This document shows positions 1,652-5,788 of a stretch of DNA of 64,000 nt, piece by piece (the stretch's first letter is position 1; each line of letters opens with the position of its first letter). Under the pieces are notes generated by a model that was given only the letters and a program-made list of their open reading frames with translations, was not told the origin of the DNA and made no database searches. This DNA is from Magallana gigas (Eukaryota), in contig NC_088860.1 of NCBI RefSeq assembly GCF_963853765.1, positions 22,878,001 to 22,942,000 on the forward strand, given 5' to 3'. Position numbers and translations under genes: made by a program.

Positions 1652-4600
1652 TCAATTAGGTGGAGTGGGATCAATTTGTTCCGAACTTCCTGGAGTTTCC
1701 TGGTTCTCTGAACTTCCTGGAGTTTTCTGGTTTCCAGGCTTTCCATCATCATTTCCTTTGCCACAATTTCCATCTTCTCCAGGATTACCATTTTTACAGT
1801 CGTCATCAGTACTGCCGCCTCCAGGACTACTGCCACCTCCAGGACTGCCACCTCCAGGACTATTGCCGCCCCCAGGATTTCCAGGACTACAATTTCCACA
1901 ATTACCACAGCCTCCCCCATTTCCACAATTACCAGAGCCTCCTCCATTTCCATTCATTCCATTCATTCCATTCATTCCATGCATACCATTCATTCCTGGT
2001 TGTCCAGGAGGTCCAGCTGGGCCTGTTTGTCCGGGTGGTCCTGGATCCCCTTTGGAACCTGGGGGTCCCGCCTCTCCTTTCATACCCGGATCTCCTTTAC
2101 TACCGTCTTTTCCAGCTAAACCTGGCAGTCCAGGAGATCCTTGATCACCTTTCTCCCCCTTCATCCCGGGATCCCCTTTCATTCCCACAGTACCGTCATT
2201 ACCCTCCGGCCCTTGAGGTCCAACATCCCCCTTATTACCTGGATCACCTCTAGGTCCGCGCTCTCCAGTTTCACCCTTGGGACCTCTCTCTCCAGGAGGA
2301 CCCGGAGGACCTTGGATACATGAATCACATTGACACCGATGTCTACCATTACTTGATGGTCTATCTACATATGGTGCACCACAATACTTGAAAGATTTAC
2401 ATGAGCAATATTGAGGCAAATTAATTTCAATCATCTTAAGATTGCTGGTTTCTTCGTCACAGTATATCCAAAGTTTAAATTGTTTGAGGCCATCTCTGTA
2501 ACAATTACTTTCATAGCCAGATGGATTGTAATAGCCCTGGTTATTACATTTTTTGCTGAAATTATAATTAATCATTTATAATTGTGCATGTTTTGAGTGT
2601 ATGTAATCATCAGGTTATAACATGTATGAAAACAATTTTAACACGATATGATTAAAATCTTACTTCAGACATTTTGCCACTAGAATCTTTTGGATTTCGG
2701 GTTTAACAACGTAGCATTCTTTTCCGTCTTTCTTGACAGTTGTTACATAACGTTGTTCATAATAGCACGCCGTCAGGAGATTGGAGTACTCTTGCTCCCT
2801 GTAATATATAATTATATTATAATATATTTTATAAATACAAATGTACACTCCGGTTGTATGCACATATATTCATATAGCATCCCTATAAACTGTAATATGC
2901 AGCAACTTAGCTGCAAATGAAGCACTCAGGGTAACTTATGTTGTGGAAATCTTAAAAGTTTTTTTAATGAGCAGCATGTTTTTCAAATGACAAGGACGAC
3001 AACCAATGGTTTTGATATTATATCTATATAGTGTAAAAAAAGATAATAATTGTCGCACATTTCATATACCAGGGGTATGTANNNNNNNNNNNNNNNNNNN
3101 NNNNNNNNNNNNNNNNNNNNNNNNNNNNNNNNNNNNNNNNNNNNNNNNNNNNNNNNNNNNNNNNNNNNNNNNNNNNNNNNNNNNNNNNNNNNNNNNNNNN
3201 NNNNNNNNNNNNNNNNNNNNNNNNNNNNNNNCCCTTTCCGGCAGTTTTGTTCAACGATTTTAACGAAAATACACATATCTGTCAACAAAGTGTAACAGAA
3301 ACGGATAAAAGTGATAAGGATAACGATTTCCTCATAGACACGATGTTATGTTTTACTCAGAAATATTCAAAGGAACGAAAAAAGAAAACAGAATGCTTAC
3401 GGAAAAATATAATGGGAAAATCTTACATATTTTTCATTTTAAGCTGTGTTTTCAAACCCAACAAACTTAAAAGACGTTTTAAAGTAAAAATATAATGACT
3501 GGTTTCTACTACTAAATGAAATTCGGTTGAATTCAAAGATATTTATTTTATGAATATCGAAAATTTAAGCAAAATTTGATGCAAGAATTTCTTTAGACAA
3601 AATATAGTAATTATATAGCTAAATAAATTTACATGAAAAGCTATTGTTTGCTTACTCATGCAAATATACTAGTAATATGTTTATTCTGACGAAAAAAGGA
3701 CACCAAGATTACCTTTATTATATACGCATGTATACATAATGAAAGTGTTTTGAGATCCCCTGTCTTTTTGTTTTTAGAAATCCCATAATTTATCAATTAA
3801 TGAATCATTCGGCAATGAAAATAACCTTGTTATACCCTTATATGTACTTATTATTGTAACATGCTGTTTAATTTATGTTTAGGAAAGTATAAAAAATTAT
3901 CATTAAATATACGAATAACGATACTCAATGTTTAAATACTTTCATATTGATGCTTGTATTGATAACGACTTGAAGGCTCATCATTTTATAGAGGGACATA
4001 CAATCATTCATTAAGGTATATTCTCTTTTGTGTAAAACCCTACTTACTCAAATTCAACGTTCCAGTTTTCCGCAGAAATTTCCTCAATTGACTCTTCGAT
4101 GTCTGTCTTACCCGCAAGAGCGTCTTCAATTTTTTTGCTGTAATGTTATACCATAAAAAATGTATTAAATGTATTAATATAAAAATATCTTTTTGTCAAA
4201 TTTCGAATGGTACAGATACCCGTCTTTCATCATTTATATCAGCAGGAAACTGTGATGGATGTATTTTCCATCGTTTTAGCATAACATAATTTTATTTTGC
4301 AAAGGGGGACAAAGAAAACATTGCAGCCATCTTTAATTCAAAATAAAAGAATGATAATTGAGAATATAAGATAATCAAAAAAAGTTCCACTTTGTAATTA
4401 GTAATAAAAGTCCCTATATTTTAAGATTGTGTGGGCCGTTTTTAGCCTAATGAGAAAATTAAATCGCTTTGAGTAAGAAGACAATAATTTTCTGTTTAGG
4501 CGGCTCGATGATAAACATATGCATTTCAATGCTGATTAATTCTTTTTTTTAAAGGTTTATTCAATTTAAACAACATTTACAACTTTTTTTTTGAATGGAA

Positions 4601-5788
4601 CATAGACTTGATGAACATAATTGATCATTTATTGTTTACACCGAAATGAATTTAAAACAGCTGGCTTGATCCTGGCCATTTTAAAAAAACCTTTTCTATG
4701 CCTCTGAAAGAAGACCTTTGTAAGAAACGTAGAATAATGATAAATTTACCTAAATAAACCTTAGATTTAAAAAAGCTTAATAATATTGTAAAGCTTGGGT
4801 GTGATATCTAAAATTGACAAGAGATGTGTTAAGTCTGTGGTCGTCAGTTACTGAGTAACGTTTTTGGTTACCTGACATCCTCACTTTGTGGTTTGGTACA
4901 GACGTTGAGCTTAGGATCCTGAGGCTCTTGGGTCACACAGTACTGTTCTTGACTATATGCGAAGACTGACCACTCTGAGTACACAACCACGAGCATAAAC
5001 AGGGACTTAAGCTGAAAACGAATAAAAGAGAACATGGAAATATAGTTTATTAAAAATGGAGGTCACCTGTTTCACCAACGCATTGCTTTGAAGAAACTTT
5101 GCAACTGATGAGATAGATGCAGTTGTCTGTGTGGCAAGACGTGTTATTAGTGTATCTCTATCTAAAAGACCATGCCGAGTGAATTTAAGGAATCATTTTT
5201 CTGATTAACGTGGTAAGGAATTTAAGTTAAATATTTAAGAAACATATTTTACATCAATACAGTTTGAGCGGGGCCAGATAACCAAAGAACATAATCTCAA
5301 TGATTTGTTCCATTCTTTAACTCAATTATCTACATCTTAGTAAAGAAAATATGTTAATTTTACATAAAAAAGACAATAAGTTTTACCCCCCCCTAAAAAA
5401 AATCCCTTCACACCAATAAGCTTGATTCCCCTTCATTTTTGCACCCGTATTGTGACCTAAAAACAACGGTACTGAAGATTTTTAATTAGATCCGATGCGT
5501 AATTTGAGATTTATGTAAAGTTATAAGCTATCGATCTGTAGTCAATTTTGTATTGATTTGCATTCGTGTTGTAAAATAGGCACCTATATTGCCGCTCAAT
5601 ATCCTGATATTATTTCGCCATTTCATAACATAGGAGAATACTAGGATAATATCGGGCATATCGAGAACATATTTATCGTAATTTTTAAATCAAAATGTAT
5701 TTTAGTCCGCGAACGCAATTTTTCCAAATAGAACATACTGGCTATTTTCAAAAGAAGTAAATGAACTTACACCCATTGCTCCTTCCAT
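1652..5788 (-). CDS. Secreted protein: signal peptide + acidic pro-region + Spaetzle-like cystine knot + collagen Gly-X-Y domain + Gly/Asn/Cys-rich tail (428 aa, 5 exons)
   Basis: Exons (minus): 5788-5771, 5011-4872, 4137-4048, 2798-2664, 2555-1652. All introns are GT-AG with phases 0,2,2,2, giving 1287 nt open to TGA. N-terminus M(EGAM)[21 protein letters not shown] looks like a signal peptide. Cys spacing TACYYEQ...[14 protein letters not shown]...GYESNC...FKLW...INLPQYCSC matches the Spaetzle knot pattern. It is followed by 47 uninterrupted Gly-X-Y triplets. The N gap at 3082-3231 lies in an intron and could hide another exon. Confidence 0.8.
3082..3231. other. Assembly gap (150 N)
   Basis: Run of N in the sequence. 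Confidence 1.

Follow-up and report, generated by a model that had tools for sequence, protein, structure and literature searches.

Here we describe a gene of the oyster Magallana gigas whose product joins a secreted pro-region and a predicted cystine-knot domain, by way of a CxCxxC cluster, to an unbroken collagen segment. The five-exon gene lies on the minus strand, at 5788..1652 of a 64,000-nucleotide (nt) stretch of contig NC_088860.1 (positions 22,878,001 to 22,942,000 of the forward strand; assembly GCF_963853765.1). This whole stretch is referred to below as the window, and positions are counted from its first letter. The coding sequence of 1287 nt runs in a single frame through all five exons and specifies a product of 428 amino acids (aa). 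Spliced RNA demonstrates the gene model and its splicing directly, and the gene is expressed. Judged by sequence comparison, the first 188 residues form a divergent member of an uncharacterized family of about 30 oyster proteins, and the last 240 residues occur in no other member of that family. As far as we have searched, the fusion of knot and collagen is new.

Results

Spliced transcripts unite the knot and collagen exons

An earlier note on this DNA, made from the letters and a list of open reading frames (ORFs), had observed that the list contains only the last exon of the gene and had placed four further in-phase exons upstream of it. Both observations hold. The listed ORF is 307 aa long, and the upstream exons are confirmed by GT..AG borders, by frame and by transcript contigs (Table 1). 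Each of the four introns is bounded by GT..AG, and the exon phases are compatible with one another.

RNA was mapped over positions 1500-7400 using the transcript contigs of three sequencing runs from three studies (X2, X7 and X11) and the raw polyA reads of run X20. A word search with 2300-2800 had returned 14 small runs that contain 0.68 of the sampled words and five runs that contain all of them (1.00); the lower share, to which X2, X7 and X11 belong, is close to that expected once the 108-nt intron between exons 4 and 5 is missing. Each of runs X2, X7 and X11 supplies one contig on the minus strand that matches either five exons (X2) or four (X7 and X11) exactly. Exon 3 is joined to exon 4 at contig positions 251->252 (X2), 343->344 (X7) and 244->245 (X11) with zero extra letters. 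The exact border is ambiguous by 1 nt (4047/2797 versus 4048/2798), one G fitting either side, and was settled by the GT..AG rule. The joints 2555->2664 and 4137->4872 are present in all three contigs and the joint 5011->5771 in that of X2, whose positions 1-20 correspond to 5771-5790 and are joined to exon 2; a 13-letter overhang on the X11 contig likewise corresponds to exon 1 (5771-5783). Raw polyA reads of X20 also span the joint of exons 4 and 5, the first mate mapping to the plus strand only, as for minus-strand RNA. At the other end of the gene, contig coverage of the tail extends down to 1687. Spliced contigs from three studies, together with raw reads, thus place the exons for knot and collagen in one mRNA.

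The assembly gap within the locus is wholly intronic. Exon 3 directly abuts exon 4 in all three contigs, indicating that the reading frame is independent of the gap and that no exon of this mRNA is hidden there. Depth over intron 3 is 0 for most of its length, the exception being a low-depth 207-nt contig at 3331-3537. A second run of N in the window, at 14328-14462, lies outside the gene.

Three further features of the transcripts concern the same locus. The X7 contig, which covers 4872-5107, reads through the acceptor of exon 2 for 96 nt of intron 1 and, relative to the window, has 16 nt inserted after 5047. This reflects either an unspliced or retained intron or an alternative 5' end, the allele being one that differs by an indel. 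At position 2191, C replaces T in all three contigs and in the raw reads (Thr250->Ala), and at position 2061, T replaces G in X11 (Pro293->Gln). Both changes fall in the collagen region and are coding polymorphisms at X/Y positions of the triplets.

Table 1. Exons and encoded segments of the knot-collagen gene, in window coordinates
Feature	Positions	Strand	Description
Exon 1	5771-5788	-	ATG at 5788 and first 6 codons; donor GTAAGT
Exon 2	4872-5011	-	Hydrophobic signal-peptide core and start of pro-region (Cys31, Cys44); AG/GT borders; aligns to family profile
Exon 3	4048-4137	-	Acidic pro-region; AG/GT borders, compatible phase; retained against family profile
Intron 3	2799-4047	-	Contains assembly gap 3082-3231 (run of N)
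Exon 4	2664-2798	-	First half of predicted cystine knot (Cys94, 111, 126); aligns to P0002 residues ~120-163 and to P0005
Exon 5, whole	1652-2555	-	Second half of knot through stop codon
Exon 5, part a	2381-2555	-	Second half of knot (Cys131, 146, 160, 178, 180, 186; LPQYCSC); phmmer and profile matches to oyster paralogues
Exon 5, part b	2312-2380	-	23-aa linker with CxCxxC (Cys202, 204, 207) at its end, abutting first Gly-X-Y
Exon 5, part c	1952-2311	-	40 unbroken canonical Gly-X-Y triplets (Pfam PF01391; regular-expression count); one RGD
Exon 5, part d	1889-1951	-	7 more in-register triplets of Gly/Asn/Cys (Cys338, 344, 347, 350); 27-nt tandem repeat
Exon 5, part e	1652-1888	-	Low-complexity tail rich in Gly/Ser/Pro/Asn, 2 Cys, acidic end, stop; 15/18/33-nt and 27-nt tandem repeats

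Architecture of the encoded protein

The product begins with a short, hydrophobic, signal-peptide-like N-terminus, followed by an acidic pro-region that holds 17 Asp and Glu in 67 aa as well as two Cys; translation and alignment to the family profile described below both agree with the earlier reading of a signal peptide and acidic pro-region here. Next comes a Cys-rich domain with nine Cys between residues 94 and 186 and the motif LPQYCSC, and then a linker in which the sequence CQCDSC occupies residues 202-207, immediately before the collagen. Gly-X-Y triplets continue unbroken from residue 210 to residue 350. The CQCDSC cluster and the 47 triplets counted in the earlier note are all present, but only about 40 of the triplets (residues 210-329) are canonical collagen, with 22 Pro and 26 charged residues in 120 aa. 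The final seven are of the Gly-X-Asn/Cys type, built of Gly-Asn/Gly/Cys units, and are set apart from true collagen. The Pfam Collagen profile (PF01391) matches at E 9.6e-17, with 61 bits where the cut-off is 27.2. Inside the helix, residue 230 marks an RGD that may well be there by chance. The C-terminal third of the protein is assembled from 9-, 15/18/33- and 27-nt tandem repeats.

The architecture proposed earlier, namely a secreted pro-region, a cystine knot, a CxCxxC cluster and a collagen, is correct. Since a single exon encodes everything from the second half of the knot through the CxCxxC cluster and the collagen to the tail, the fusion is not a product of alternative splicing. Neither a paralogue (tblastn with the pro-region and knot) nor a second collagen (six-frame scan for Gly-X-Y) is found elsewhere in the 64-kb window.

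A divergent member of an uncharacterized oyster family

Relatives of the N-terminal portion were sought with single sequences and with profiles. The half-knot encoded in exon 5 gave no match in a word-index search. The same half-knot (80 aa), used as a phmmer query against 1.84 billion representatives, gave five matches, of which P0002, P0004 and P0005 are real; P0001, a repeat protein, and P0003, a protein of 7,671 aa, were rejected as spurious. A half-knot used as a single sequence is an insensitive query, recovering 3 relatives against 30 by profile. The 30 found by profile word search are proteins of Ostrea edulis, Crassostrea virginica, C. gigas and C. angulata, together with exon-only ORFs taken from contigs of the Logan collection. 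Every relative with a name is annotated as 'uncharacterized protein', and none carries a precomputed Pfam domain. Neither the window protein itself nor any relative more than 50% identical to it was found in a collection of 15 billion proteins, in which no match is closer than 46% identity.

When aligned to a profile built from 17 full-length family members, with the window protein excluded, residues 14-188 match positions 6-174 of the 180 in the profile, with a score of 122.6 bits. This match indicates homology to the family throughout the signal peptide, the pro-region and the knot. The closest full-domain paralogue is C. gigas LOC105324248 (XP_011421602.1, here P0002), with 37% identity over 110 aa. 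The window protein sits beside the LOC105324248 group on a long branch of 1.87 changes per column, its exact placement being unsure, and it lacks two Cys that most family members carry. The exon-only ORFs of paralogues (the end of P0009; the starts of P0004 and P0008) break close to where exon 4 gives way to exon 5 in the window gene, with three of the knot Cys before the break and the fourth after it.

What follows the knot sets the window protein apart. Full-length relatives end 1-20 aa past the last knot Cys, all 30 relatives have at most three Gly-X-Y triplets and none contains a collagen, and the linker with its CxCxxC cluster is absent from every paralogue. A literature search of limited reach, covering the paralogue accessions, the family and the knot-collagen architecture, returned no description. 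Within these limited searches, the suggestion of the earlier note that the architecture had not been described is upheld.

Within the family itself (P0018-P0026 and P0028), two well-separated knot subfamilies can be distinguished by the motifs WTRLQFWVWC...RWYPQCCSC and FR.F.VW.YC...LPQCCSC, and each is represented by several copies per oyster species.

Fold and subclass of the Cys-rich domain

The fold of the domain was modelled with AlphaFold2 on residues 112-232 of paralogue P0002. An alignment of 23 rows that includes the two exon pieces of the window protein yielded a model with a mean predicted local distance difference test (pLDDT) score of 79, its four long strands reaching 97-98. The model obtained from a 4-row alignment (pLDDT 47) was discarded and nothing was concluded from it.

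In a Foldseek search of the PDB with the accepted model, no E value fell below 4e-3, and the top 50 matches were without exception cystine-knot factors, including sclerostin, coagulogen, noggin, NT-3, IL-17F, VEGF, TGF-beta and Spz1C. An exhaustive VIA-align comparison with 48,161 chains placed cystine-knot growth factors in all of the best 37 positions, with unrelated folds appearing from Z 2.6. The best match is NGF (1sg1_A; Z 6.5, root-mean-square deviation 3.4, 85 aligned), followed by sclerostin (Z 6.2), proNGF (Z 5.8), the vWF CTCK domain (Z 5.5), gremlin (Z 5.4), coagulogen (Z 4.2) and Drosophila Spaetzle (3e07; Z 3.7). IL-17A scores Z 5.5-5.8 across the VIA-align comparison and a re-alignment of Foldseek's list, which agrees with the exhaustive search; Aedes Spz1C scores Z 2.6. 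By shape in the ESM Atlas, the best two-way match is a Spaetzle cluster (template-modelling (TM) scores of 0.52/0.52, 98 aligned). This model gives good support to a cystine-knot growth-factor fold in the family, which extends to the window protein through homology, in keeping with the knot that the earlier note had predicted from the spacing of Cys.

That note had further called the knot Spaetzle-type. Language-model features of P0002 and P0005 place Spaetzle clusters first, with scores of 0.92-0.93 (according to the tool, the range typical for true family members) and 195-203 shared features. Among the 60 Atlas clusters nearest by features, 28 share a Spaetzle-only family set, and a few IL-17 and Noggin clusters appear at lower scores. 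The window's own half-knot reaches a feature score of only 0.82, with Spaetzle, NGF and IL-17 clusters, and serves as a lead only. In Pfam, Spaetzle (PF16077) is the sole knot family matched at E<=1, in 2 of 23 family sequences. The better of these matches (P0002:112-232, profile positions 21-95 of 96) has 15.3 bits against a gathering cut-off of 27 and an E value of 0.032; for the whole of P0002 the E value is 0.23. No match to Pfam IL17, DAN, Noggin or Cys_knot occurs at E<=1 among the 23 sequences. The separate exon pieces of the window protein match Collagen alone in Pfam, with no knot family; matches of these pieces to NAC and SWIM were dismissed as noise. Searches of the sequences of solved structures with 4-row and 23-row profiles gave nothing useful.

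The arrangement of Cys adds to this comparison. The spacer between the ring Cys is 4-6 residues long, without the CxGxC of DAN, CTCK, TGF-beta and PDGF knots, and none of the six knot Cys is missing. The ring spacers of NGF and Spaetzle are likewise long, and IL-17 has a four-Cys knot without the third disulfide. No Arg or dibasic site precedes Cys94 in the window protein, an Arg common in paralogues being Asn there. Many paralogues share a conserved 'ER' approximately 20 aa upstream of the knot, which is a putative cleavage site only.

The Spaetzle-type assignment therefore stands in part. It is favored by the feature clusters and by the sole, sub-threshold, Pfam match to a knot family, but that match lies below the cut-off, NGF, sclerostin and IL-17A are tied by shape within 1 Z, and Drosophila Spaetzle itself scores lower than all three. 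We class the domain as an NGF/Spaetzle-like cystine-knot cytokine domain of the oyster family and not as a demonstrated member of PF16077; the Spaetzle-type label is plausible but falls below the thresholds for membership.

Other features of the window

Upstream of the gene, 46 nt at 6798-6843 lie under RNA contigs and reads of X2, X7 and X20 on both strands, and the unmatched flanks of these contigs differ on each side. This segment has no joint with the knot-collagen mRNA and may represent either a transcribed repeat or, in a multi-copy gene, a micro-exon.

Several other ORFs were recognized by eye. On the plus strand, two paralogous ORFs of approximately 300 aa with similar N-termini (21468-22379 and 34067-34939) are followed by stretches that resemble cyclase exons (22411-22755 and 39058-39426), and the pair may represent tandem guanylate-cyclase-like genes. 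Also on the plus strand, an unbroken ORF of 546 aa (36061-37701) has the look of a DDE-type (pogo/Tigger-like) transposase with a terminal Cys/His finger. On the minus strand, the ORFs at 44114-45079 and 42761-43165 jointly resemble an alpha-1,3-fucosyltransferase (FYLAFENS-type motif), and a single-exon ORF of 387 aa (56994-58157) resembles a rhodopsin-type G-protein-coupled receptor, with DRW and NPxxY-like motifs.

Discussion

The architecture suggests how the protein might assemble. The 40 unbroken triplets would form a trimeric collagen rod of about 35 nm. Interchain disulfides would staple its ends, N-terminally through the CxCxxC cluster and C-terminally through the four Cys of the Gly-X-Asn segment; we propose these roles because both groups of Cys occupy sites at which collagen chains are stapled to one another. 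One end of the rod would then display three knot heads. Since knots of this class dimerize, and since nine Cys leave one unpaired, the heads of separate trimers may link to one another, giving either closed hexamers or a disulfide-bonded network.

Comparison with known systems shows which parts of this design are familiar. Like Spaetzle, NGF and coagulogen (PF16077, PF00243), the window protein would be a secreted molecule whose pro-region, at the N-terminus, leads into a knot of approximately 100 aa with two long beta-hairpins, a ring spacer that exceeds CxGxC and a terminal C-x-C. Unlike them, its knot is not C-terminal, 240 aa of collagen and repeats coming after it, and contains nine Cys; it has no visible Arg or dibasic activation site, and its similarity to these families lies under every curated threshold. 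With oyster paralogues such as LOC105324248 and O. edulis LOC130046528, it shares a homologous signal peptide, pro-region and knot over 188 aa, whereas the paralogues stop shortly after the knot and are free of collagen; the window protein is also set apart by its long branch and by the lack of two Cys found in most members. Likeness to IL-17 (PF06083) exists at the level of the fold alone, and likeness to the DAN, CTCK, TGF-beta and PDGF knots, exemplified by the sclerostin score, at the level of the superfamily.

The second half of the protein finds its parallels elsewhere. EDA-A1, the collectins, C1q and adiponectin, the ficolins and MARCO likewise combine a short collagen helix with a globular domain and Cys staples, an arrangement that raises valency. 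However, the heads of these proteins (TNF, C1q, the CTLD neck and FReD) are trimeric and usually lie C-terminal to the collagen. The head of the window protein belongs to a dimer-forming class of fold and is N-terminal, which creates a mismatch of symmetry between head and stalk. Cnidarian minicollagens offer a resemblance in working principle only: they too place a short collagen helix between Cys-rich segments, which could switch to intermolecular disulfides and yield a tough network, but they show no homology to the window protein, belong to an unrelated taxon and tissue, and have as Cys-rich parts not growth-factor knots but six-Cys modules of approximately 20 aa.

The most likely role of the protein, to which we give an even chance, is that of an extracellular-matrix or biomaterial protein in which the knot acts as a cross-linking or docking node; a signaling function could coexist with this role. 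We favor it over that of a pure ligand because of the repeat-built tail of Gly, Asn, Ser, Pro and Cys, the absence of two Cys typical of the family, and the long branch. The length of this branch suggests that constraint changed after the fusion.

Several considerations weigh against this reading. The modelled fold is that of a paralogue with 37% identity to the window protein and not that of the window protein's own domain. The Z scores of 5-6.5 are moderate, and they convince solely in that unrelated folds fall far below them. Trimerization, the disulfide pattern, dimerization of the heads and location in the matrix are all steps that we infer. Finally, the conserved pro-region and the six knot Cys would fit a still-functional ligand equally well.

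That alternative, a multivalent ligand either soluble or tethered to the matrix, has a real but lesser chance of being correct. The knot would be the active part, with a receptor of the Toll/TLR, p75/Trk-like or IL-17R type as its target, and the collagen would only raise valency or provide an anchor, as collagen stalks do in EDA-A1, collectins and C1q. The pro-region and the Cys framework of the knot are shared with collagen-free paralogues, the language-model features of those paralogues lead to Spaetzle and NGF ligand clusters, and the fold is typical of secreted ligands and of ligand antagonists. Against this stand the lack of a visible basic processing site between pro-region and knot in the window protein, its very long branch with the loss of two family Cys, and a repeat tail that resembles that of a material protein. 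A more specific proposal, in which the protein founds a new class of oligomeric cytokine, seems to us rather doubtful; here the three collagen-borne NGF/Spaetzle-like heads would pair as dimers into hexamers or lattices, and these would either store the ligand in the matrix or bring receptors, Toll-type or other, into clusters.

It is unlikely that the knot instead belongs to the IL-17 type or to the DAN/sclerostin/Noggin subclass, so that the fold class would be right and the framing as a Toll ligand misplaced. The shape comparison does put IL-17A and sclerostin within 1 Z of NGF and well above both Drosophila Spaetzle and Aedes Spz1C. The protein also contains an AKC-x4-C-x-N stretch that by eye seems reminiscent of IL-17A. 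IL-17 genes are, moreover, expanded in marine molluscs (PMC8353272). These arguments are opposed by the Pfam results, in which Spaetzle was matched twice and none of the IL17, DAN, Noggin and Cys_knot families was matched in the same 23 sequences, by the Spaetzle-only clusters among the nearest Atlas neighbors and the Spaetzle cluster that is the best two-way TM match, and by the Cys pattern itself, with a C-x4-6-C ring spacer rather than CxGxC and all six knot Cys, unlike IL-17. An artefact, whether a chimeric assembly or a mis-joined transcript that combines knot and collagen exons from separate genes, might be suspected from the assembly gap and from the absence of the protein from the collections searched, but is extremely improbable given one continuous ORF in one exon for the second knot half and the collagen, an intronic gap, and three independent contigs and raw reads that unite the exons exactly at GT..AG.

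Whether as matrix protein or as ligand, the fusion bears on how such folds are used. Cystine-knot cytokines, including neurotrophins, Spaetzle and IL-17, are known as free dimers, and the heads on which collagen stalks are known are trimeric. Fusing a dimer fold naturally to a trimer stalk would provide a test case for symmetry mismatch as a means of building higher-order assemblies. It also represents either the recruitment of a signaling fold into a matrix protein or that of a matrix stalk into a signal. The analysis in addition brings to light a secreted oyster knot family of approximately 30 members without Pfam assignment, and a well-expressed gene that is missing from the protein collections searched. 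Oysters possess very large repertoires of Toll-like receptors and few known endogenous ligands, so candidate ligands are worth having. If the proposal of an oligomeric cytokine were true, the window protein would constitute a lophotrochozoan high-valency cystine-knot signal without a known counterpart in flies or vertebrates.

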